Shown: one piece after another, positions 191 through 30,759 of the stretch
Position numbering within the stretch: the first letter of the stretch is position 1
Layout: each line of letters starts with the position of its first letter
Assembly: GCA_002104905.1 (NCBI GenBank)
Contig: MCFE01000236.1
Coordinates: forward strand, 1-64,000
From: Basidiobolus meristosporus CBS 931.73
Lineage: Eukaryota; Fungi; Basidiobolomycota
DNA length: 64,000 nucleotides
Direction: 5' to 3'
Position numbers and translations under genes: made by a program
The notes under the pieces: model-generated
Database searches by the model: none
What the model was told of the DNA's origin: nothing
The model's input: only the letters and a program-made list of their open reading frames with translations

Positions 191-2693
191 TTAGAGTTTA
201 GAAGCAGTTGCTTCCTTGCCAGCACTTTCGGTGCAACGACCCTCCTTTAGACGGGCCTCCATTTTGCTCAGCTCTTCTTTCAACTCATTCGGAAAATGTT
301 CACCAAAGATCGAGAAGTATTCCCTATTCTCCTGTACTTGATTTGCGAAAGAATCCCGATTGACGCTCAAGAGCTCTGACATCACTTCAGGGGTCGCTTC
401 TTTTTCAATTCCTGAAAGGTCTAGTGATGTGGGTTTGGGAAGATATCCAATGGCTGTTGCCTGAGCCTCAGATTCAGGGTTTTCGATGCGTTCGACAATC
501 CACTTTAGAACTCTAAATTGAGGCAAGTGTAAATAATACACGAAATATGAAAAGTAGATCGGATTCCTTCTCTGACCGTGAATTGTCCCCAAAGCCTGGC
601 CAAAGGAATTTTCCATTTGATCCTTTGCGGAACCAATTTACATGAAAGATCGCCGGAAGCTGTGTTGGATCAGGTACGGATTTTCCAAGTGTAATCCAGT
701 GCCTAGTAGAATAGAGGGCTCGATTATTGGATTCTTTCCAAGCTGTTGAAGGCTAACCACTTACTTGAAGTAGTCACCCATATTGTATCCACAGAACGGT
801 AACATTGCAAATGGATCATGCCTTACTCTCCCAATATCAGTACCTTCAGCAGCAGCCGTCTTTTCACTCGCTACACATGCTCCCAACAAGACACCATGAT
901 TCCAATTCAAAGCTTGGAACACTAGTGGGATCGTGTGCTCACGCCTACCTCCGAAAATGATAGCGGAGATGGGAACACCATTTGGGTCTTCCCAGCGTGG
1001 GTCTTTTACTGGGCATTGGGATATGGATGCCGTAAAACGTGAATTCGAATGCGCTAATGGCTCTTTGCGTACCGGTTCCACATCGCTCTTTTCCCATTCT
1101 ACACCACGCCAATCAATTATTTTACCAGAAGGAGGCTGTTTAGTCATTCCTTCCCACCAGACATCGCCATCTTCTGTCAACGCTACATTCGTGAATATGG
1201 TATTGCTGCGTATAGTTTCCATCGCATTAGGGTTGGTTGAGCTAGAAGTACCAGGTGCTACTCCGAAAAACCCAGCCTCAGGATTTATTGCATACAGACG
1301 AGAGTCCTTTTCGTTGATTCTCATCCAGGCAATATCGTCACCTATCGTTTCTATCTTCCATCCAGGTAAGGCTGGTTCCATCATTGCTAGATTAGTTTTT
1401 CCACACGCGCTAAAAGCGAATAAAGGCATCAATAACGATCCAGACCATGTCTCGTCTGTGGATTTACCTGGGGAAAGCGGCTGCAACATAATACTTCTTT
1501 CCCTCGGGGCTCGTTAATCCTAAGATTAGCATATGCTCCGCCAATGTTCCTTCGTCCCTTGACATTACTGAAGCGATACGTAGAGCGAGGCATTTTTTGC
1601 CCAATAGAGAATTGCCCCCATACCTATGTATGCACTGTAAATTTCTACTCGAAGAGACACATTGTATTTCTAAATACCCTGAACCGAAGCTCCAGATTTC
1701 TCTTGTTTCGGGGAAGTGGACTACTTTACGCTCTGGAATATTACAAGGCCAAAGAGAATCCTCTTTGCCATTTGGAAGTGGACATCCCACTGAATGTATA
1801 CATGGAACGAAGTCTCCATTATCTCCTAGCTGATCCAAAACTTTACTGCCCATACGAGTCATTATGCGCATGTTGGCCACAACAAACGGCGAATCCGTAA
1901 TTTGAACACCTATTCTCGCTAAAGGCGATCCGATGGGACCCATGCTGAACGGTATCACATACATCGTGCGCCCTTCATCACAACCATAACCTCATTAAAT
2001 CGGGATGAAGTACGAGCAGAGATCGACATGTTTTGCTTACCCTCCATGCATCCATTGAAGTTTTTCGCCAACTTGGCTCTCATGTCCTCGGGATTGACCC
2101 AATTGTTTGTGGGGCTGAAATGTGCAAGCAGATACTTTAGCGACAAGTATACAGCATATGATTCTAGGGATCTCACAAACCCAGCATCCTCTTGGTTCTT
2201 CGAGCATATAAATGTGGAATCCTCTGCTCTAGCAACATCAGCCGGATCCGTGCGAGTTAAGTATGAGTTTGGTCGTTTAGATGCATTCAATGGTATCATG
2301 ACTCCGCGCTTGACTAATGAGTCAACCAGAGTCTTATACTCTTTTTCTGAGCCATCAACCCAATGAACCTTGGACGGCTTTAGTATTCTCTCATGTTTCG
2401 AGACCCATTCTTTGAGTTTTTGATTGCCACCAGTATAGTAAGTGCGGAGAAATTTGGAATGTAGTGATCGACGACCCTGAATTCTAGTGGGCTTTGTTGA
2501 TCGAATCATCCCACAAGATAATGGTTAACAGCAGCCGCAAATCTCGATGATTAAAGGACGTACTTACCACTACTCCCCTTGGCATGCTTGAATGCAGGCT
2601 TACTGGAACGATATTCCTGGAACTTTCCTGTTACTAATGAAGGCTTCAAGATGGCATACAGAGCACCTGGAGGACCTACCTTAAACGCAGCAT
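191..2693 (-). CDS. PCK: Phosphoenolpyruvate carboxykinase, GTP-dependent type, probable mitochondrial presequence (multi-exon)
   Basis: Spliced ORFs 1955-2509, 1464-1964, 761-1489 and 191-616 give GTP-PEPCK motifs: [37 protein letters not shown]|[49 protein letters not shown]. The 5' exons were inferred from GT/AG sites: ATG at 2693, giving [34 protein letters not shown]. Confidence 0.93.
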
Positions 2694-4993
2694 TTTGGGT
2701 TTCACAGTACTGTAAATACGATAACAAACAAATGATCGTTCGAGGAGAGCAGGCTATGGCTGAACAGGTTGATATTTGTACAATAAAATGTAGACCAACT
2801 TTCTTTGCTTATGGTGACAAAGGCTCTGCGTAGTCCTGTGTCAGCCGAGATAGTGGGTTGAAAGAAAGAGGAAAGGAAGAGAGAGAGTTCTGACTTGGAT
2901 GCGTTGGCTGTGAAAGACCCGCACGACCTATTTATTCAATTATGAAAGCGAAACCCTAGCCCATTAAATCAATCGAATTCCGGAATACAAAGAATATCGG
3001 CAACCCAAGGACATGTCTCCTACCTTTCAACAGATATTTGGAGTGAATTGAATGTCTCTCTATTTTCGTTGGGCGTAAGGTTAGGAAGAAATCGGAGAAA
3101 TGCAGTGTAGATTAGGCGAGAGGCGAATTTGGCCTGATTCACCAGGGAACACAACGTGTGCGTGTGTGCGGATGCCATTTGAATGGGAGAATATCCAGCA
3201 GTGGGTTTAGGCTCAGCCTTGGGTACATTCCCGTTTTGGAGTGCAGCCACTTTGATGCACCGGATGATTCATTTCACAAGGCTACGCATCAACAGTCAGG
3301 GAAACATTGAGTGGTACATGTGAAGAATTATCACGAGGTGGGAAATAGCATTCGGACCTATGCAGTATGGTGCCTTCAAAAAATACTAATTTGAGCAGAT
3401 AATAACGGATTAAACTCAGGGGATTATCACCAATGCTCTAGTGATGTAAAAGGGGTCTGTTAGTAGCTGATGTTCAATGGATCACATCGTTGTCATATGA
3501 TTCCAAGACAGGACGATTAGTCTTTGGAATACCACAAATGAATTTGTCATATAAGGTACCGTCGAAAGGGGCTACGAGTAGGATGGCGGACGGATAGATA
3601 TTGGACTGGTCTTAATTGTGAGAAGGGATGAACAATTCTACACGGGGTGTTTCGACTGGCATAGATGAGTGGTGAGAGTATTGCCAAATCTCGCCACATT
3701 CCTTTCACGATGCGGACACCAAGCGTGTGTTGGATGACCGATGGGCCATGATTGGTAAACAAATGTCTTTATTGATCATGTCACCTTCGGAGTTCCGATT
3801 TTGTGCTTCAAAGGCCACTGATTATCTGATCCTTAGCACATTCAGGAATTCATTTTAAAAATACATAGTGCGTACCCTGCTGTTGTTCTGATTAAACCCT
3901 GGTTTCTTGGGAAATAAAAGCAGCGGTCACACCTTGGAGACACATGAAAATAGCAGATCCGCACTATTGTCTGACATCCCAAAGCAAGCCGATGTGAATG
4001 GACAAACAAGGTAGCTGATTTCAGGCATACTTCGCTCTGCAATGGAATGAATTCGCGATCGCTAGGATTTGATCCTCCTATAGGAGCCATCCTAAGGCGT
4101 CTGGTATTGACCCAATCCTCCGACATGTTAAGTGTCACGGTATTGGTAGGCTAATACTACTTCTGATCATCGACTTCGTGCAACCGGCTATGCTACTAAG
4201 GAAACTTCCATCCACAAAAGAAGTCAAAGACTGAGGGGTCTTCCCAACCCAAGCTGGATTGCATTCTTTCCCTGATGAAGCAGTCGTGCAATGGTTGATG
4301 CTAGACCACTCGTCTTACTCACCCTTCACGATACCAAGTCCAGGCTTCAAGAAGAGGGTCTACGCGGTGTCTTTTCTTGATTAACCAACACTTCCTACCC
4401 GCTTTGCTAGGTGAATCCTAGGGTTCGAGGCTGTATAGCTTCACAAAGTTTCTTTATTACGTTATATGCTGCTTTTCTCGGTGTAGATCCTAACTAGTGT
4501 TTTGTGATTCTGCGTAACCCTTGGCTGCTTGGAAATTCTATACTTGATTGTTCTTGTCAGGGTTACCTTCGCACTACGTTAAAGGGACGGTTAGCAATAA
4601 GAAAACCAAACTTGACTTGACAGACTCGAAAGCAAATAGTGCGTTTTTCACATTTATCATATATTCATTGTGGATCTGCGAAAGAGGGTACAAGTTTCAT
4701 AGTAATATTTTTCTTTTCTTTCCTACACACAACCTCTCGATACACGTTGGAGCTCGACTTTAGACTTCATCCAAGCTTTTGCCAAGAGAGATGAGACAAC
4801 AAGTTTCGCCTATTGGTTGAATTCTGGTCAAATCAATCGAATGTTTTCCGAACAGTATAATAAAATAGAAGCCCATTTCTCGGACTGGTGACGTGAATCT
4901 CGTGTATTGATGTTTATACATGAATTAATTGCTGTTTGCGCCTGATTTCTTAATATTATTTAGTTATCGTAATTCTCAACTCTAATTCTTAAA

Positions 4994-7858
4994 ATGTCTG
5001 AGCAACAGAAAGCCAAAAATTTTCGCAAACCTTCGTTGAAGACAAGTCGAAATCCGAAATTTAGAGAGCAGTCCGAAGGCTCATTCACTCCGCAGTATGA
5101 TGCCACCAGTTGGCAGAATTGGTCAGCGAAAGGGAATTCGGAAATTTCTTCGGATGAGGTTGTATCGAGCATCATCAAAAGCCAACCCGACAAGCCCGTC
5201 GAAAGTAGTCTCACCCTTCAACACGTAAATCTTCTCGAGGGTACTAACGCGAACGTTTCAGATCTGAATTCTAGAAAGGAATCTATTAAAACACCGGATG
5301 GTCCACTTAACCACGGTTATTCATCGGATCAGAAGATTAGAAACACGATGCTACTTAGCACACAAGCAGGAAGGCTATTATGCGTTTCCAACATTAGAGG
5401 TGGGGCTGTCTGACTCTACATCATACACCTTTAAAAGCGTACTAATCTCTCCACCGTTTGATCTATACAGGCAATTACTCTTTCCTTAATCAGCTAATAA
5501 AAAGCCACGAGGCTGTAGCAGTTTTACACTGTGGAGAATTCGGAATTCACGGTAACTACCTTCAGTAAAGTCTTTTTCACCCAAGGTAACCAACATGGAA
5601 ACTTTAGATACCGAGAGCTATGCTCGAATGTCAGAGAGGTAGAGAACGCCTATGTTGCGATGCTATGGCCTGACAATAGATATTAAACCATTTGTCTCCT
5701 CAGCTCCTTACGGAGCGTTATCAAGTATAGTCCGTTACTGTCCAAAGAAGACAAAGCGGAATTAAACAATCTGCCCATAGAAAGTCTGCGTAAGCAGCCA
5801 GCCTGTCTCGGGCTCTCGCAATTTCCCGCCGCACTCTCCGGTGCATTCAAATTTGATGCACCTGTCTTCACAATTCATGGTGTTCACGAAGACCCTGCTG
5901 TTCTACGCAAATTGCTTGACGAGACGATCACCATCCCACAATTACATATTTTACACTGTGGAGGTAGCAACACGCTCGAGATCGGTGGGAATAGAATCCG
6001 CTTGTTGGGAATTTCTGGCGACTATTCACCTCAACAATTATTTGCCCCCGAACGTAAAGTCCAAATCCAATTACTCTCACGTAAATGCGTGTGGTCATGT
6101 GCACTAACATTCTCTTAGGTCAAACTAGCGACTTATTCGTCAATCTTGTTCGAATTGGAAAGCTTATGGAGACCGCACAAAAGGTAATGCTACCAGAATC
6201 CCTTCATCTCACCAAGCAAGCTCACTGATTATTTTATCAGGTCTATGACCCATCTGAGGTTCGAATCCTGATGATGACGGCCTCGCCAACCAAGCATACC
6301 GTTTTAGCACAACTGGCACACACACTCAACGTAATTATATTCCCACTCGATTTCAATGCAAACCCATCTAGATATTAACCTGTCCCCAGGCGGACTACAC
6401 TATTGCCCCAGAAGAATCTGCCCAGTATTGCATAAGCTATAACGAGACATCAACCTTGTCAGATCCTAAAGCTTATCACGAGAAACTGATCAAAGCCCGC
6501 TCAGCCTTAATGGGGCTATGGGAAAAGGCACGCGTGGACATCGAGAAGGATTATAGGTAACCATCACTCCCAATACTTCGCCTGGCTCAACAGTGTGCTA
6601 ATCTTATCTCCCCATCAGCTCCCAAGAAATTCAATGGATCAAGCATGGCCTATCCGCCTTGAATGATCTTCCCGAAACCGAAAGTCTCTTGGAACGCTTT
6701 TGGGCGTTTGGGTTGCCCGAACTGACGAAGGGGTCTTTGATTTTGGACATTTCGGATGGCTTCATCGCTGCCGAAACCAAATCCACAGGTAAGTTTCGGT
6801 CACAATCTGTAGATTTCAATGTGTACTCACGCTTCCTTCAAAGGCATATATTTTGGACATCGTCTGAAGAATGCTTTCATGCTGAAGCCCAAGGATTCTG
6901 CTATTAGCAACGTTGTTACCAACGGGATTCAAAAACCAAGTAATGCGACAGCGAACCATTTAATTAACCTCTCCACATCGGCTAATGATCTATGTGCCTT
7001 CTAGTGGACAACGAGGTTTCGAAGCCGACTTTGAACCTCCAAAATGAACCCGTATCGGTTGCATCTACCGACCTTAATGGAGGCGCCCCAAAACAAGAGA
7101 ATAACGCTACAACCGAAGAGCAGAAGGGAATTTCCAGCTGGGATGATGTTGTGGCGGACGAAGTGGGTCAAATGAACTGGGATGAGCCAGTATTTGATGG
7201 GCCGATGAACTGGGATGAGGATTTGCCAGAAAACATCTCAAAAGGCCACATGATAGATTGGAGTGAAGATGTGTACGAGGAAAATGGCAGCTGGGTCGAC
7301 TTGAACCCTCCAAGTGGTACCACTGCTGCTTCTGTAGATCCCGTACCGGCAAAACTCGGCGCGGATGATGCGACGAAGAGCAACAAGCTAGGAATGGGAG
7401 CCAGCGCGAGCGTTTGGGCAGACTCGGAGACTGCAAAATCAAGCACCACATCTTCTGGGGAGCCTTACACGCTGTGGGTTGGTGGATTTAACAAAATTCC
7501 GTATACTGAAGAGGATGTGAAGAGCATCTTCGGAAGTTTGCGGAATTCAATCAGCCAAGTGAAATTGGTGCACGATCGTCACACTGGACAACAACGAGCA
7601 TTCTGCTTTGTTGATTTCAAGGATGCCGATAGCATGGAACGCGGACATAGAAAAGATGGATGTGAATGGAACAACGGCATTCTGAAGATCAACAGAGCTG
7701 AACACCGTGAACAAACCTTTAGCCGACCTCGCGTACAAGCCAACACATCCCGACGAACTGATGGACATTATGACGATACTGATCCCTCCAGGACATCATA
7801 CCGAGGACGTGGAAGATCGAGAGGTCGTGGTAGAGGTCGTAACTTCTCATTCGACTGA
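4994..7858 (+). CDS. DUF2433-family degenerate calcineurin-like phosphoesterase fused to an acidic Trp-repeat linker, RRM and RG tail (multi-exon)
   Basis: Manual splicing gives RLLCVSNIRG|NYSFLNQLIKSHEAVAVLHCGEFGIH|DTESYARMSE..KYSPLL..APVFTIHGVHEDPAVL..RLLGISG..VYDPSEVRILMMTASP..ADYTI..SYNE..LILDISDGFIAAETKSTG. This follows the fungal DUF2433 family segment by segment (recalled). The last exon has an RRM (TLWVGG; RAFCFVDF) and RGRGRSRGRGRG. Confidence 0.8.
7172..7219 (+). repeat. Direct 15-nt repeat ATGAACTGGGATGAG (MNWDE x2, 33-nt period)
   Basis: Identical copies at 7172-7186 and 7205-7219 inside the acidic linker. Confidence 0.9.
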
Positions 7859-21380: not shown

Positions 21381-24063
21381 CTAGTTCCAAAATTCTTGGA
21401 CTGAATATATATTACGTTGCCACATGTTAGCAGGTAGCCCTTGCTCTCGAAGGTAGGTTCTTTTGCAAAATTCTCGAAGTAGCAGCATTTTCTTAGGTGT
21501 TCTCTCCAACGCAAATTGCAGGTGAGCCTCAAGGGTACGGTTTTGTTCAACCTGTGATACTCTGTGTTCACTCGATGAGGTAGTGACATTCTTAACTGGC
21601 AAAAGTGATATATACAGGTCGTTTAGATTTCGGACTTGAAAGATTTGCTGGAGTATGGCTTCGGAAAATACAAAATGAAAGAATTCCCGGTAAATGAACG
21701 AGCCATTACGAATAAGCAGCTCAGAAACCCATTGGAGTTGCTCAGGCAACTGCTCCTCTACAAACTGAATCAGCACCAAGAGATCCCCTATCAAATCGTG
21801 ATTAAAGCCGCTTTCTTCGATTTCGCTCACATACAAAGCTGTTAGATTTTTTAGACTGCGGCTCAGAAATTCATGCGTAGACACTGGTCGAAGTCGAAAC
21901 TTGGAGGATTGTTCAAGATCGCAGCGTAAGTCACTGAATTCAGGTGCCAATCCCGAATATATTATTGGGAACAGATACTTGCGAGCAATCTGATAGCGGA
22001 TTAGCAACACGCTGATGGGTAAGGCAATTGAAACACTGGTACCTTGTGCTGGCCCATATGTTCGCTAGTCAAGCTAAGCGAATAGAGTAATCGAAAGTGG
22101 TATAGAGGGTGGTATAAGACTGAAGCCCCATCGGTAATCTCGTTTTTCTCTCGCCACCTAGCTTGGCATCTATCTGACAATGTTCGATAAAGACTGTGTG
22201 AATCCGAGTAACGTTTCTATATACAAGAGGCGTTGTGAGAACCACGAAAAGTTTTTGAGATACATATTCGCTCTTACCTCCATCAGATGAATATCCGCTC
22301 TGCACAATAGAATCGCATTCACAATGTGGAAGGGTAAGGACCAATTGTTGAGTACATCTTCCAAGACCCCTTCACCAGTGCTCTCTAGTAGGTTGAGAAG
22401 CTCCTGTGCCTTGCGCAATGTAACAGTGGTCTGCACTGTTAATTTCATGTTATCTATTTGTACAAAGCCATTTAGTTTCTCGGCGGACAATCCATTGACA
22501 TCCAGAACTTTACCCTCTTGTGACGATGTTTGAGCGCTCGCTTCAGTTGGATTGCCTGCCACCGCCCCTTTTGATTTCTGCTTGCTCTTTGTGAATTTAC
22601 CAATTTTGGCTTTCTTGGACTTCTTTTCCTGCTTCGAGGTACCAACCGGGATAGAGCATTCTAATAAATCTCAAGGTTAGACAAGAGCTTCAGGGCATGC
22701 TCCGAACTTGAGCTCACCATTGAGTTTCTCCGGATTGAATATTAATGACTGGTATTCGAAGCATATTTGGGTAAAGCAGGTTGCCAAAAACAGAGATTTA
22801 AAGGGTGGAGGTAAATTCGTCTTATCCAGAAGAACCGACTCTAGGAGAGCATCTGGAAACAAAAGATTGGAGTTCTGATCAGGTTCTATTGTGGCGATTG
22901 TACTAGCAAGATTTGTCTAAATCAGTATTTGTACAAGAAATGCCAGTTTCATGAACTTGAGTCACCATTGTTCGGGAAGAAATCCACATTGTTTGAACAC
23001 ATGTACCATCGATTGATACATAGTTTTCCATTCAATCTGTGCAACATAATAGGCTTGATGAAGTCTCATCCATTGCAGCAATTGCTCATATGACGGTGAG
23101 CTCTGATTGACCGGATCTGCATGGGAATATTTGGCTTTCGGATCACATCGCACTTTGTACATGAAAATTTGGGGCAAAACTCCGTATACTAAAAGGGAGC
23201 TTTAGAAAAACTGGTGCAAATAAACATCAGAAATGTCTTACTAAAGAAGCGCCGGTAAATGTTTACTGGAACCAAGGGCGCATTTTCCTTTTCAGCCCTA
23301 ATCACCAAGTCAGCGGCAATCAACTGGAGAAACAAAAAATCAGAATCTGAGGTACAGCATACGACTTTGTGAGCGTACCCCGTGCTTGAAGGCCAACTCA
23401 GGAAATAAATAGCCAAGATATGCCAATATACGGGCAGCATCAAGTAGTCGGTTCGTTGAGAAGTAGCAGTCTTACAGAGAACTCGTCAGTCAAAAGGAAA
23501 CTGAATAACACACTATATAAACCATAGTACCTGCTACTTCAATCAGCAACTCCTTTTGTATAGCACTCGGCATCCGACGAAATAATTCTTGTATCCCCAT
23601 AGAAAGAATTATCAGTGGTCAACGTGACGGGGGATAAATTATTTGCCAAAGCTTACCTGCTTGGTTTTCGTTCGACCCGAGTAGAACAGAATGCACTATA
23701 TGGCATACTAATTTCTTATACTTCTCCTCGTAGTTGTGTTTCAACCTCCTTGAGAAAAATTAACATCTTAAGTCAGGTCCAATAGTCATGATTACTTACA
23801 GATGAGTCAAAACATGCAACGCTTTCTCGAAGTTTCTTTCGGCAAGGGTTAAATCTAATAACAGTAGCTTCAGAAATGTAAACATCCCGTCAAAAAGTCT
23901 AGTCTGATAAGCTGAGTTAAAGACTAACTTGGACTTCAAAGACTGCATTATATTCATTCACTAGCGGAATGAGCTTCAGTTTAGCTAAATCGGTCACGCC
24001 ATTGTCCAAATCCTTTCTGATATTTTCTAAACAGTAGCGTAAAGTGTTCTCCAGAAGAGGCAT
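21381..24063 (-). CDS. INTS10: Integrator complex subunit 10 homolog (multi-exon; fragmented in ORF track)
   Basis: Spliced translation aligns with recalled human INTS10 at both ends. N-terminal: ELFRRMPSAIQKELLIEVA ~ SLFETLPGRVQCEMLLKVT; LGYLFPELAFKHG ~ LRRFPETVVQHG; PVNIYRRFFIYGVLP ~ PVNCFRKLFVCDVLP. C-terminal: NGSFIYREFFHFVFSEAILQQI ~ [28 protein letters not shown] ~ VLHRFC. The start could also be 24096; middle exons are approximate. Confidence 0.78.
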
Positions 24064-24740: not shown

Positions 24741-26016
24741 TTAGGCATCAGCCTTGAACTGGATCTCGCGGCTATCATTAATTGCACCTACAACCTTGCT
24801 CTTCTTGATGGAAGCATTGTAATTGCGGCAGTCGTTGGAGACCTGGATCTTGGGAATGGCAACGCATTTTCCAATCACCTCGGAATCAATGTTCAATTTG
24901 GCGTATACGTTAGCATACCGGCCACCATTCTTGGAAGCGAAGGCTTGTTGTGCGTAGTAGATTTGCATAAGGGCAAAGCGAGTAGGGTAGTTTGGATCTT
25001 CAACAAATGGAACAGAAGTGTCAGTGGTATCCTTGAACTCAACATGACCCCAAAGGTCAGGGTTGGTAGGATCATTGGAATATTGTGGAGTCCAGGAGAA
25101 CTGATATTTCGTGGAAACTTCATGGCGTCTCTGTAATGACTGAGTGTTGGCAACCGGTGGAATTCCGAAGAAGAGAGAGGCAGTGCTAGTGGTATTGGAT
25201 TGATCTGGCAGAGGATATACGGAGGTTGGGTTATATCCGGTACGCAAAAAGTTCATGTTTTGGTATGCTGGAACACCTTCTACATCGCGTTTGCTGGAGT
25301 GCTTATTGGACAGGAGGCTCTTGTGGAGCTTCCATTCGACGGACCAAAAGCCTCCTTTGACTTTACTCCATCTTGGGTCATTGACCTTACCATTGGTGAA
25401 CACTTTGTACTCAAATTTAGATTGAATGTCCCATGGCTTGCCCACCCCGTTGTTACTGGGAGGTTTGTCATAAATCAAAGCCTCATACAACCCCAAAGCA
25501 TTCATCTTGATCACCTTTAGATTACGACTGGTGCGATCGGCATCAAGATAGAATTGGAAATCATTGTCGTCCCATTCTAAAACAAATCTTAGTTAATTTG
25601 AAACCCCGTCCACGGCAGCGCGAATTCTTACTTTGCCCTTCGTAATATTTGGTCTTGGCACGAATGACTTCCTCATCGATTTGAGCACCAACGTAAATAT
25701 AGTCCGAATCAAACATAATCTAGATTGCGATTAGTAACCGGCTTTAGGTATCTAGTCGAGATTCATTTACCTTGACGCGAGTGTTCATCATTGAAGGAGG
25801 GGGTGTACCAGCAGGCCCCTGAATATTACCAAAGTTATCAGTCCATGGCACCTTCTGCCAAGCCTCATCATCAAGTTTTCCATCCAGGATAATAGGGCCA
25901 GTAGACCGATAAGATACGTGAGTTTTGGGTGAAGGAACCTTACAGGTGTTATTGCCCAAAGACGAAGCAGCAACACCCAATACTACAAAGGATTGAAGGA
26001 CTTCGGATAATCTCAT
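24741..26016 (-). CDS. Secreted carbohydrate-binding family 9-like (DOMON-like CBM9) protein, three exons
   Basis: Signal peptide MRLSEVLQSFVVLGVAASSLG; IILDGKLDDEAWQKVPWTDNF; NTRVK|IMFDSDYIYVGAQI; DDNDFQFYLDAD; MNALG; WSVEW; C-terminal FALMQIYYAQQAF. Introns at 25720-25770 and 25577-25631. Confidence 0.78.
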
Positions 26017-27346
26017 GATATGCTATGGATGTGAGGGATGTTCAAGGTGTCAATGGTTTACTAAGGAGTATGAATAGATTTGCTCTGTTACAATAGTGCA
26101 GAAAGAGGAGCGAATGTACCGACGGCCAAGCGTCTGTAAAATGAAAGGATAAATGAATAAGGATATCAGTGGTCGTGAACGTTGGGACCTCAAACATATT
26201 TAAGCTTATAGCCCAGTGGGATCGCAGTTTGCTCTATTGCTAAAGAAAACTAGTATCATTACTTTGAGTTCGTCCCAAAACCGGTCCAATATAAATCGTG
26301 CAACCAGCAATGGTATTTCAATCCAATGCAGCAGACAAAGCGTTGAATAGATCGCTATCATAGGCTTTGCTGCAACTCTTCTCATTTGATTTGTTGATCT
26401 CCTTAGCATTTTTGTAGCCAATTACAAACCCCAGCGATTGGTTACTTTCGGCGCCGTCCATATTGCAATTAGGAAGTAATTTATGATACAAGCTGTTGCT
26501 AAATGCGGACTGGGATTCTATTATTCTCAGGAACAGTTACCCACAGATACCATTAATATCCAAAGGGACAAGTAGCAGTGATCGCCATGTTTAAAACTTG
26601 GACTATCGATAGCTCGCTAAGCACTCCGAGGTCTTTTGTGGATATTACATGATTCTATGGGTATCACCTTGAATAATTTGTACTACCAACTTCAATGGGA
26701 CTCTGCAGCTGCGTAGTTTTCTATGGAAGCTCCAGACGGGTGTTCAGATCAATTTTCTTACTGCACTTAACCTTCATTCAGAAGTCTAATGATTTGTCTA
26801 AGTGTTTCAGCTGTTTCTGAGGATACTGGGAAATCTAGCTTAAATGAGATAACCTCCTATCGTACCACTCCACTTTTATTATGCCAATCCTATGTTTGTT
26901 CTAATATCCATATGCATTACTGATACATATATGTTCATCCTTGCCACCCATCCGATTGCAACTAAGATTACTACTTTAATTGGGCCCGTTTATCTTGCAT
27001 GCCGTCGGCTAGATGCTTGGGTGATGATAGTAAGCCCATTTAGAACATAGTTTTTATATAGTCAATCCTCTAATGCACGAGTCCTTTGTGGGTACCCCAG
27101 ATGTCTATACTGCCTTTTGTAGTTGATGTACAATTTCATCAGTCAGTGCGCCAGCATAGTGGTTTTTCCCTAAACGTCGTATTAACTAATAGTTGCATCT
27201 AGGCATATGAAATATGTGCTAGTTTGTTACAATCTACATCTCCATGAACAGCATAGAAATGTATATTTATTATATGAACCGTATATTAGGATAACGCTAG
27301 GCAAAACTATTCTTGATCATAATGGATTTGTGAGAAGGTAACAAAT

Positions 27347-28165
27347 CTACCAAGGAGTGGATTTGTTGGTGTTTGGATTGCGACCAGGTAACATCTTCAA
27401 CGGTGTCTTGGAGTATGGTACAGCGTTAATAACAACGTTCGTATTCCACCCCTTCTTTTCGAAAGGTGCACGCGAGTTCTTGTTGTTAGGATCCCAGCAT
27501 CTGTTCCACTTGCAAACTCCCAATCTATCACCCCAGCCAATAGCACAAAGCTGCTTGCTAGGGTTACGAGGATCGCCGCCTTCAAATGCAGCGCCTTGCT
27601 TGGTGCCCTTTGGACCACCTTTGACAATAATATCTGAACAAGAGTAGAAGTCCCCATGTCCTTGCATGGAGCCGTACCATGACCATTGAAGAGTCCATTC
27701 GCCATCGTCCAACCACTTGGGAATATTGATGGCAGTGTTGCAATTTTTAGTATTGCCGCCTAATTTGTCATTGTTGTTTTTGTCACTTTGGCCGCGACAT
27801 CCAGGTCCGGCTTCGTAACAGGAGTATTTGTGAACATTGTTGTCGAATTCACTTGCACTATCAGACTTGGAGGTTTTGGCGAAAGCAAGACGAATAAAAC
27901 CACCAGGATGGTTGTTGCGTGCCCAGGAAACACTGATCTCCTGACCTCTCTGGAATACAGCACGCTTATTCATAGGAGTTACAACGATGCTTTCGCAGGG
28001 ACCGTAGCATTTCTTGGGATTTGAGCCCGTGAATGTCTTTCCATCTAAACGGCATTGACCTTGTCTAACTCGCGGATCGGGTCCAGTAAGGTAGGAGTGG
28101 CCTTGAACGTTGATGGAACAAGCAAGTGAGACGATTGCAAGAGTGATCAGATTTTTCCCCCACAT
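27347..28165 (-). CDS. Secreted putative lytic polysaccharide monooxygenase (His-brace, AA10/chitin-binding type-4-like), intronless
   Basis: The first in-frame ATG is at 28165 (the ORF track starts at an upstream TTG). A 22-aa signal peptide ends ...NVQG and is followed by H-S-Y-L-T-G-P-D-P-R. Second His in WARNNHPGGF; GEWTLQWSW; GDFYSCSDIIV. TATAAA-like element ~115 nt upstream. Confidence 0.75.
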   Translation of the reverse strand: MWGKNLITLAIVSLACSINVQGHSYLTGPDPRVRQGQCRLDGKTFTGSNPKKCYGPCESIVVTPMNKRAVFQRGQEISVSWARNNHPGGFIRLAFAKTSKSDSASEFDNNVHKYSCYEAGPGCRGQSDKNNNDKLGGNTKNCNTAINIPKWLDDGEWTLQWSWYGSMQGHGDFYSCSDIIVKGGPKGTKQGAAFEGGDPRNPSKQLCAIGWGDRLGVCKWNRCWDPNNKNSRAPFEKKGWNTNVVINAVPYSKTPLKMLPGRNPNTNKSTPW

Positions 28166-30318
28166 ATTGAGAAAGGATTTCAAAGTGAAGTAATTCAGTT
28201 AATGGAAGTGGCCTGCACTAAGAGGATGAGGTTTTCAATGACCAGAAGTGAGATACTGAAGACATAGCGACGCCGTACTTTATATTCCGTCAAGGTCAGG
28301 GCCAACTCAAAGCATATCAAGAGATAAGTGAAGATGGTAATTAATATTGTACCACCGTCAGCGGATAACTACCATAACCCTTTCTAGATGAAATCAAGTA
28401 TTTCCTAGGATATGGTCCGCTAAGAAAGTCCGGTATCACCACTAATACATTAGTTGTTGTACTACTTCTTGATAATCCATTGAGTACCAGCGATTTTCTT
28501 GCAGTTCGATAACTTATGCAAGGTTAATTGGTTAGGAAAGAATGATGCCACTACTGCAGATAGCTATGGCTCAAGGAGATGTAACGTTTGGCATAATGTA
28601 ATTGGCGTTATTTTTAGGGTCGCATTTCACACAGTAAATTGCACAACGACTTCTGTTTCGTACAAGTGATTGAAGCCATATGCAGACACAAGGAATGCAA
28701 TAGTGGGTAAACGAATAAGACACCTTCTGTCAAGGGCAGTCCGCATACTAAATATCTTTGTTCCCAGCCATTATCATTATCCCTTTGACTACTTGTTTAA
28801 ACTAGGGCCTGTACAACCATATTAGTTTTTCCAGTTATAGACCAAGTCTCCAAGAACATTAATTTTCGGCGTCTAAGGCTGATGACAAGGGCCCTAACCA
28901 GCTGTGACACCTACACTTCAACATAAAGCACTCGAGATTCTGGGGGGGTTAGCCAATTACGCATGATATATTAAGGGTTAAAACCAAGAATTCTGGATAT
29001 TTGAGGAATACAGCCGTACTGTATGGACTGAATACTACTCTTATGTTAAAGTCAATGCTGCAGCAGATATGAAGTGATTCATTTGTGCTTAATGATCTCT
29101 GTTGGCGCATAAACATTTAGGTTGGTGGATGGTTCATATTTGACCGGCAAAAATCCCGTTGTACATTCGCAACTAACACAACACCCGTGTGTGTAAGGGA
29201 TCAGATCTCCTGAAGAAACTGGCGAAATTAGCACAAATCTCAAGTAGGTAAACAGCATTTGGAGGAGTTGGATGAAGACCCCAGTTAATGCGAAAACGTT
29301 TTCATAGATGCTAATCGCATGGCTCATTGTGGTGGTAGTACTTCATATCACCTCTTTATGGCACTTGGCCTGATAGCCCCATCACATTCTGACAATTCAT
29401 CTAGTACATTTACAAAAAGGTCGCATGGATCAAGGAAACGCTAATCTACAGGTTGTCTAAATCCGTAGTGCATTGAATGAACACACAAACAACGACACTA
29501 CTGTTAATAGTAGTGACGTGCGAACCGCCGTCCGACTACATATTTATGCGGCAGTCGAGTGTTTGATTGTCACTGGGAACATGGCCTCCCTTCATAACAG
29601 TCTGTCGAGGATGGTTATCAGTTTGCACGAGCCTTTATTTTGATCATCCGCCAATCTTAAATATGCTCACATGATTGACTAGCTTTATGCAGCAAGCTAG
29701 AAAGTATCATGATGGGTGTACAACTGCATGAAATCTGTGGCTGTAGTGTAAGCACTGAGACCTATGCACGAACAATATGTGATATCTTCATATCTAATGC
29801 CACCCGACTCGACGATACTCCTGTCAGTTTGAAGTCATTGTAGTTTCTAATATTTTCAGGCATTTTACCTTATAGGGAAGACTGGGCCAGCAAAGCTGAT
29901 GCTGCAGCATAGATGAAATGCTTCAGTATCTGACCTGATAGCGCATTGTTGATGATCGAAGCTGTATCAAGTATAGATCACATCTCTTGTTACAAGCAAC
30001 CAAAGATACATGGATCGATATCACATAGTGTGTAGTCTATCCATTCGCCAATTACCGTATACGCATATTCAAGGCATTGTTGTCGAATGTGATATAGTAA
30101 ACATCTCAAAAACATGCTTAGAAGTCACCTTTTTATTCTCTATAGAGTGGACTGTTCACTTGGATATAACGAGAGGAGAAAAATGTTTACTTCGAAGAGC
30201 ACAAACTTCAGCGCAGATTTATACAGTTGGACTAGAACAAGTTTTAGCTGGTGGTCAAAGAAAAACCTGAATTGTAAATATCTGACATTGTCAAGTAAAA
30301 GGTGACTGAGACAGTCCC

Positions 30319-30759
30319 CTATTTATCCTTAGGTTGCGAGTAGAGCCCCGTGGAGAACGTTCTTGCCCCAACCCACCCCCATTTGAAAGTCACCTCGTTC
30401 GCACAGATTTCTCCAAAGCCCATAAACACCCCGCTTAAAAAGGGCAAAAACAGGTTAAATGCAAAGATTTTAAGAATGGCGAGCAACCGTGGATGACGAT
30501 AGAATGGCACAATTGCCGTGGTGCTCTCGACCTGCTTAACAGAGGGTTTCGCTAGTGGGAAGTCCGAGGGTAGATCAACAGAGCCATCATCAATTTCGCT
30601 CTCTAATTCCTCTATTTCGGCTATCGATTGTGTCTGGATATTTGAACTGGAAATTGAAGTCGACCTGTTATTTGCAAAGGATGCCGTGGTCAAAACGGAA
30701 CTCCTTTGAAAGGTAGCAGATGGCTGAAGAATAGACGCAAGCGATGGTCCAGAAGACAT
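30319..30759 (-). CDS. MIM1: Mitochondrial outer-membrane import protein Mim1 (TOM13)
   Basis: FNLFLPFLSGVFMGFGEICANEVTFKWGW matches the Mim1 transmembrane signature. Acidic N-terminus. First ATG at 30759. Confidence 0.85.
   Translation of the reverse strand: MSSGPSLASILQPSATFQRSSVLTTASFANNRSTSISSSNIQTQSIAEIEELESEIDDGSVDLPSDFPLAKPSVKQVESTTAIVPFYRHPRLLAILKIFAFNLFLPFLSGVFMGFGEICANEVTFKWGWVGARTFSTGLYSQPKDK

Follow-up and report, generated by a model that had tools for sequence, protein, structure and literature searches.

Each family of LPMOs has opened new biology and brought new industrial enzymes, and to our knowledge it is an open question which second-sphere residues render a histidine brace catalytic. 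Among the described families, AA11 is the closest in sequence to the protein analyzed here, and in structure little separates the other LPMO families in their distance from this protein. A Glu placed two residues ahead of an axial Tyr is a combination that has been called unique to, and invariant in, AA11 structures (PMC12186267), and dbCAN-based studies have reported an expansion of AA11 in Kickxellomycotina (PMC9866270) and its enrichment in the secretomes of Entomophthorales and Zoopagomycota (PMC11105155, PMC9391592).

The gene described here lies in a 64,000 nt stretch of contig MCFE01000236.1 of Basidiobolus meristosporus CBS 931.73 (the window). Its product is probably a secreted, mononuclear copper enzyme of the LPMO type, from a large eukaryotic family distantly related to fungal AA11. 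The family has hundreds of members, is reached at cutoff by no Pfam or NCBIfam model and has no characterized representative. A missing Glu/Gln near the axial residue, at least seven Tyr/Phe switches and natural domain fusions make it a comparative series for copper-site tuning, and its sequence predicts a candidate chitin-attacking enzyme in Basidiobolus.

The gene, its product and its relatives

The gene is an uninterrupted minus-strand ORF that runs from an ATG at 28163-28165 to a TAG at 27347-27349 and encodes 272 aa. The original prediction was of an intronless gene with a set of listed motifs, and the intact single-exon ORF contains every one of them: VQG directly followed by HSYLTGPDPR, RNNHPGGF, WTLQWSW, QGHGDFYSCSDIIV, and FEGGD with three Cys after it. 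The features of the locus are as follows.

27347..28165, minus strand: complete single-exon CDS for an LPMO-like protein, 272 codons plus TAG (ORF list and translation)
28100..28165, minus strand: predicted signal peptide, residues 1-22, with a Val-Gln-Gly end (hydrophobicity and -3/-1 rule; same layout in relatives)
28097..28099, minus strand: codon of His23, the predicted N-terminal copper ligand and first residue (His1) of the mature protein (aligns to His1 of AoAA11 4mah)
27908..27910, minus strand: codon of His86 (mature His64), predicted second brace ligand, in R-N-N-H-x-G-G-F (conservation among relatives)
27647..27649, minus strand: codon of Phe173 (mature Phe151), predicted axial residue (aligns with the AA11 axial Tyr motif)
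27482..28099, minus strand: conserved family domain, mature residues 1-206 (core of the AF2 model, and family consensus through the three Cys)
27350..27481, minus strand: C-terminal tail of 44 residues (conserved between the Basidiobolus paralogues; one metagenomic relative retains part of it)

The N-terminus resembles a signal peptide: Lys4 precedes a hydrophobic core that spans residues 5-16 (Kyte-Doolittle mean >2), and positions -3 and -1 are occupied by Val and Gly. The cleavage site, as predicted from the -3/-1 rule and the hydrophobicity profile, would release a mature protein of 250 aa that begins at His23 and contains 10 Cys and 4 His. The family domain consists of an LPMO beta-sandwich core (residues 1 to ~170) and a Cys-containing extension (F-x-G-G-D, then three Cys) that is found family-wide and is part of the domain. 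HMM matches of the relatives mostly stop at profile positions 220-228, and the Basidiobolus-type tail comprises only the last ~44 residues. This tail has no Pfam match, recognizable module or hydrophobic GPI-type end, and its pLDDT is low; the C-terminus of the protein is hydrophilic. The Pfam scan found no carbohydrate-binding module, and indeed no relevant match of any kind at E values up to 10, while the NCBIfam scan returned one weak match, to SCE4755 (NF043005), which covers profile positions 27-145 of 146 and scores 22.4 bits (E 1e-4) where the cutoff is 75. The protein is thus captured by no model of either collection, in keeping with the unclassified status first ascribed to it.

A word-index homologue search with the single protein matched only two hypothetical proteins of B. 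ranarum, so an exhaustive search was needed, and 1.84 billion cluster representatives were searched by HMMER with a profile of three Basidiobolus sequences. This gave 427 cluster representatives at E ≤1e-3 and 242 at E ≤1e-10, and the window protein is not an orphan. The few named sources are Basidiobolus, Coemansia (Kickxellomycotina) and the red algae Pyropia and Neoporphyra; other representatives are EukProt entries, and the majority lie on short metagenome or metatranscriptome contigs. None has a precomputed Pfam domain. The family had been placed in early-diverging fungi; a restriction to these is not supported, as relatives are also found among red algae and EukProt protists and in many metatranscriptomes.

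The predicted copper ligands are strongly conserved. A His aligns to His23 in 113 of the 117 relatives that cover this position, and in 101 relatives the conserved N-terminal His comes after a stretch that resembles a signal peptide and is directly preceded by a small residue. His86 (precursor numbering) is kept in 155 of 161 relatives, and the surrounding R-N-N-H-x-G-G-F is a hallmark of the family. Such conservation of both His residues, with a signal-like stretch before the first, places these features beyond chance. It also agrees with two proposals made from the single sequence, that His becomes residue 1 after VQG (by a cleavage predicted by rule, with a layout common to the 101 relatives) and that the His of RNNHPGGF is the second one. 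Cys176 (precursor numbering) is a Cys in 149 relatives. Across 151 relatives, position 171 is Gly in 101, position 172 is Asp in 108 and Glu in 16, and the axial position 173 is Tyr in 122 and Phe in 19.

The B. ranarum orthologue has the same length, shares 90% aa identity and is annotated as a single exon, and a second B. ranarum paralogue is 76-79% identical, varying with the alignment; tblastn found no paralogue inside the window. The lack of introns had been read as compatible with recent transfer or retroposition, and such a history would fit the single exon and the faint resemblance (E 1e-4) to SCE4755, a bacterial family. Recent acquisition is nonetheless highly improbable and is not supported by the locus. 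The window from ~20.5 to 32.2 kb is collinear with a B. ranarum contig, and the two coding sequences are 79% identical, with a saturated pS of 0.75 and a pN of 0.057, which indicates strong purifying selection across a long divergence. With a GC content of 0.47 and a GC3 of 0.48, the gene is inside the range that the window's other long ORFs span, and the adjoining TOM13 gene is likewise intronless. The existence of the second B. ranarum paralogue also argues against recent acquisition, as do the closest relatives, which are eukaryotic, and the SCE4755 score, which is far under its cutoff, with only 6 of 95 relatives matching that model at E 1e-3.

Several features of the neighborhood can be noted. 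Directly downstream on the same strand (24750-26025, minus strand) is a gene of about three exons for a secreted protein, and the two genes are adjacent in both Basidiobolus species. The B. ranarum orthologue of this downstream gene (389 aa) has a weak CBM9_1 match, and a Pfam scan of the window copy, exon by exon, gave nothing significant. Just upstream of its LPMO-like gene, B. ranarum has a DAHP synthase gene and, further upstream, a BIR-domain gene; by tblastx neither has a counterpart anywhere in the window. The otherwise collinear region thus differs by gene-sized insertions or deletions (window positions 28230-30320 compared with positions 1694-3538 and 5768-6928 of the B. ranarum contig L001). 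Within the syntenic block, window positions 21381-24063, first read as an INTS10 homologue, match a 682-aa B. ranarum gene without Pfam matches.

Predicted fold and active-site surroundings

An alignment of 95 mature domains (A2) was used for the family profile, the tree and an AF2 model. The model has a mean pLDDT of 72.6, with core blocks mostly at 83-97 and a poorly predicted stretch of 75 residues at the C-terminus. Foldseek against the PDB returned LPMOs only, with AA11 first at E 2.6e-7. VIA-align gave Z scores of 11.4-12.1 for AA11 (best 12.1, 11.9 and 11.5), 11.4 for AA15, 11.0 for LaX325, 10.9 for both AA10 and AA9, and 10.7 for AA13, and every one of these alignments starts at model residue 1. 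The shape neighbors of the window protein in the ESM Atlas are also LPMO families. The predicted fold is unambiguously that of an LPMO which, together with the signal-like start before the His and the retained second His, bears out the original view of the protein as a His-brace LPMO candidate.

The maximum-likelihood tree of A2 has two well-supported clades. In the first, Glu96 and Gln138 (mature numbering) are almost invariant, and it holds the window protein, its B. ranarum kin, Coemansia, and the members bearing CBM18 and GH18 domains. In the second, to which the red algal members belong, residue 138 is Gly and residue 96 varies. This pattern suggests that the two clades have different active-site surroundings. 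Of the A2 sequences, 83 have Tyr at the axial position, 10 have Phe and 2 have Trp, and the tree requires at least seven changes there. Measured against the 85% consensus of the family, the window protein differs at two places only, Gly144 to Ser and Tyr151 to Phe. Judged from this alignment and tree, the Phe is a local, derived substitution in a Tyr-type family and not a mark of AA10 ancestry, so that its likeness to AA10 is convergent.

The motif at this site is Gly171-Asp172-Phe173, where most of the family has Gly-Asp-Tyr. Three residues upstream of the Phe is a His (Q-G-H-G-D-F) that in A2 is confined to the Basidiobolus sequences and that hmmalign places in 17 of 161 rows. The description of this second sphere as atypical, with a Gly two residues before the Phe and a nearby His, is therefore apt, the His being uncommon in the family. 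The conserved Asp beside the axial residue could be an extra copper ligand.

Domain fusions and proposed activity

Full-length relatives carry hevein-type Chitin_bind_1/CBM18 domains in six cases, a GH18 chitinase in three and CBM_2 in one. One of the CBM18-bearing proteins (P0004) is 47% identical to the window domain, and the GH18 domains of the three relatives are complete, with E values down to 5e-83. Other relatives have ricin-type lectin domains (one protein) or PKD/EGF or PAN modules, and in total 9 of ~14 informative fusions are to chitin-related partners. A combination of three domains is found in P0040 (L002 333-4880, also L003), where a 1515-aa ORF joins the family domain to a cupredoxin of the plastocyanin/azurin type (384-479) and a GH18 domain (770-1138). 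It is present in four contigs that come from separate samples, with the ORF spanning the contig like a transcript, as in metatranscriptome-type data. From its domain content P0040 may be a natural fusion of an LPMO, an electron carrier and a chitinase, and the cupredoxin, placed between the LPMO-like domain and the chitinase, would suit an oxidative step that is supplied with electrons and precedes hydrolysis.

The fusions to CBM18 and GH18 make a link to chitin plausible, as had been suggested for the window protein, and support a chitin-directed redox role. Arthropod remains and the guts of amphibians and reptiles are habitats of Basidiobolus. We infer that the substrate is most likely chitin, either dietary (arthropod cuticle, other fungi) or in the fungus's own wall.

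As a secreted copper enzyme of the LPMO type, the protein would act as follows. The signal peptide would be cleaved after Gly22 to expose His1, whose amino group and ring nitrogen would form a histidine brace with His64 around a single copper, and Phe151 would sit beneath the metal. An external reductant would bring the copper to Cu(I), and H2O2 or O2 would drive the oxidative breakage of glycosidic bonds within an insoluble polysaccharide, most likely chitin. The analysis itself shows an intact gene under purifying selection, an LPMO fold, homology to AA11, conservation of both His and of an aromatic axial residue, and fusions of relatives to chitin-related domains; the cleavage site, copper binding, catalysis and substrate are what we infer.

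Two other functions have to be weighed against this one. The protein shares with X325/Bim1 the fold, an N-terminal His brace and small size, and it might be a non-catalytic, LPMO-fold copper protein of that kind, with a role in copper capture or another cell-surface redox process. The Z score for LaX325 is at most one unit from those of true LPMOs, the window protein has no CBM and carries Gly where AA9 and AA11 have Gln or Glu, the acidic residue before the axial position (Asp or Glu in 124 of 151 relatives) could fill a fourth coordination site, and one distant relative has a faint match to BIM1-like_dom. This function is unlikely, however, as the window protein has neither sequence similarity to X325/Bim1 nor, in the Pfam scan, a match to BIM1-like_dom (PF20238), and the family profile found no X325 chain in the PDB even at E 10. 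Its hydrophilic C-terminus also lacks a GPI-anchor signal, and a hydrophobic C-terminal tail is seen in just 6 of 129 relatives. The fusions of relatives to chitinases (GH18), chitin-binding modules (CBM18) and CBM2 point instead to action on polysaccharides.

The second is that the enzyme is an active LPMO on a substrate other than chitin, such as cellulose, another beta-glucan, or polymers of its own wall during remodeling. The relatives with CBM_2, ricin-type lectin, PKD/EGF or PAN modules would be consistent with this, as would the variation in substrate preference among AA11 members (PMC12186267), and the window protein itself has no module that indicates a substrate. Such a specificity is rather improbable given the predominance of chitin-related partners among the informative fusions, some of them in the window protein's own clade, and an LPMO acting on chitin is the preferred reading.

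Comparison with known LPMO families

When the single protein was compared with the PDB, AA11 structures alone were matched, and weakly (E 0.013-0.03 over ~60 residues). The profile of the 95-sequence family was more sensitive, and its match to AoAA11 4mah (39.6 bits) covers chain residues 1-156. In this alignment His1 lies on His1, the second His (His86) on the histidine of H-G-G-G, which in AA11 structures is the second copper His, and the Tyr of the family on the axial Tyr motif. The AA11 references were AoAA11 4mah/4mai, AfAA11B 9exj/9hdg and AfAA11A 7p3u. The E values of the family profile were as follows.

AoAA11 (4mah): 5.4e-9
AfAA11B: 7.9e-8
AfAA11A: 6e-7
AA9 chains: mostly 1e-4 to 0.05, with two weaker (0.34 and 1.2)
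AA16 chain 7ze9, of the LPMO_10 type: ~0.02
AA15: 0.07

The likeness to AA10 consists of the LPMO fold (Z 9-11) and an axial Phe, which is found in many AA10 members. However, Pfam LPMO_10 (PF03067) is matched neither by the window protein at E ≤10 nor by 108 relatives at E 1e-3, and the AA16 chain 7ze9 is the sole LPMO_10-type chain found by the family profile. An AA10 identity was rejected for want of an LPMO_10 match. The AA10-like label first given to the protein has to be dropped, as the profile favors AA11 (5.4e-9 against ~0.02) and the Phe is lineage-specific.

With AA9 the protein shares the fold and the profile matches listed above, and a few relatives have sub-threshold matches to Pfam AA9 (best 1.4e-7), but the window protein has neither an AA9 match nor the His...Gln-x-Tyr motif, and the similarity is weaker than to AA11. 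The bacterial SCE4755 family resembles it in a weak, full-length profile match and in a language-model similarity of 0.90-0.91 in the ESM Atlas. Membership in SCE4755 was rejected because the score is under the curated cutoff; few relatives match the model, and SCE4755 is itself uncharacterized. AA18, a family cited to Santos et al. 2025, appears to be of the CelOCE type and unrelated. Searches of the literature found nothing on SCE4755, and those on red-algal LPMOs, AA19/AA20 and structure-mined LPMO families found no description of the present family. The 'LPMO14' of Voshol et al. (PMC5320794), considered as a candidate, is an Ascomycota/oomycete family with a different architecture. As a separate observation, sub-threshold matches to DUF7492 (Pfam) were seen in a Coemansia protein (P0027) and four other relatives (alignment A3). 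The ESM Atlas places DUF7492 mostly in Zoopagomycota, and from these matches it may be a further LPMO-like family related to that of the window protein.

AA11 remains the nearest of the described families, being the best match in both sequence and structure. His1, the second His (in H-x-G-G), the strand W-x-W and the motif aromatic-x-x-Cys all line up, and AA11 is likewise secreted, fungal and linked to chitin. The protein may then be a divergent member of CAZy AA11, already counted by dbCAN-type annotation, in which case it would represent a divergent AA11 subgroup of lesser interest; this is a realistic assignment but a rather doubtful one. AA11 apparently has no Pfam model (AA11-like clusters in the ESM Atlas carry no Pfam), so that the blank Pfam result does not by itself exclude membership, and the groups in which dbCAN-based studies report expansion or enrichment of AA11 include that of Coemansia, which carries members of the present family. 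Against it, the single sequence reaches AA11 chains only at the weak E values given above, structure-based identity to the window protein is 17-20%, and the profile match to 4mah indicates homology yet is far under typical within-family scores. The same profile reaches AA9 at 1e-4, which puts the family between families. Where AA11 has the Tyr-Glu pair, the family has Gly-Asp-Tyr and the window protein Gly-Asp-Phe; as Gly occupies the Glu position in this protein and two thirds of the family, a feature that defines AA11 is lacking despite significant homology.

It is tentatively proposed, as a serious possibility, that these proteins form a separate, unnumbered family of chitin-active LPMOs with a new second-sphere solution. 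Its features would be R-N-N-H-x-G-G-F, G-D-Y/F without Glu/Gln, and, in one clade, the Glu96/Gln138 pair. Its members would be found in zygomycete fungi, in red algae and in many eukaryotes that are uncultured, joined in some of these organisms to a cupredoxin and GH18 in one polypeptide. Unlike AA11, the family has its own R-N-N-H-x-G-G-F hallmark, a conserved Cys extension, and red algal and protist members. The LPMO fold and the histidine brace are known from described systems, and the window protein belongs to either an uncharacterized family or a deep subgroup of AA11 with an unusual second sphere.
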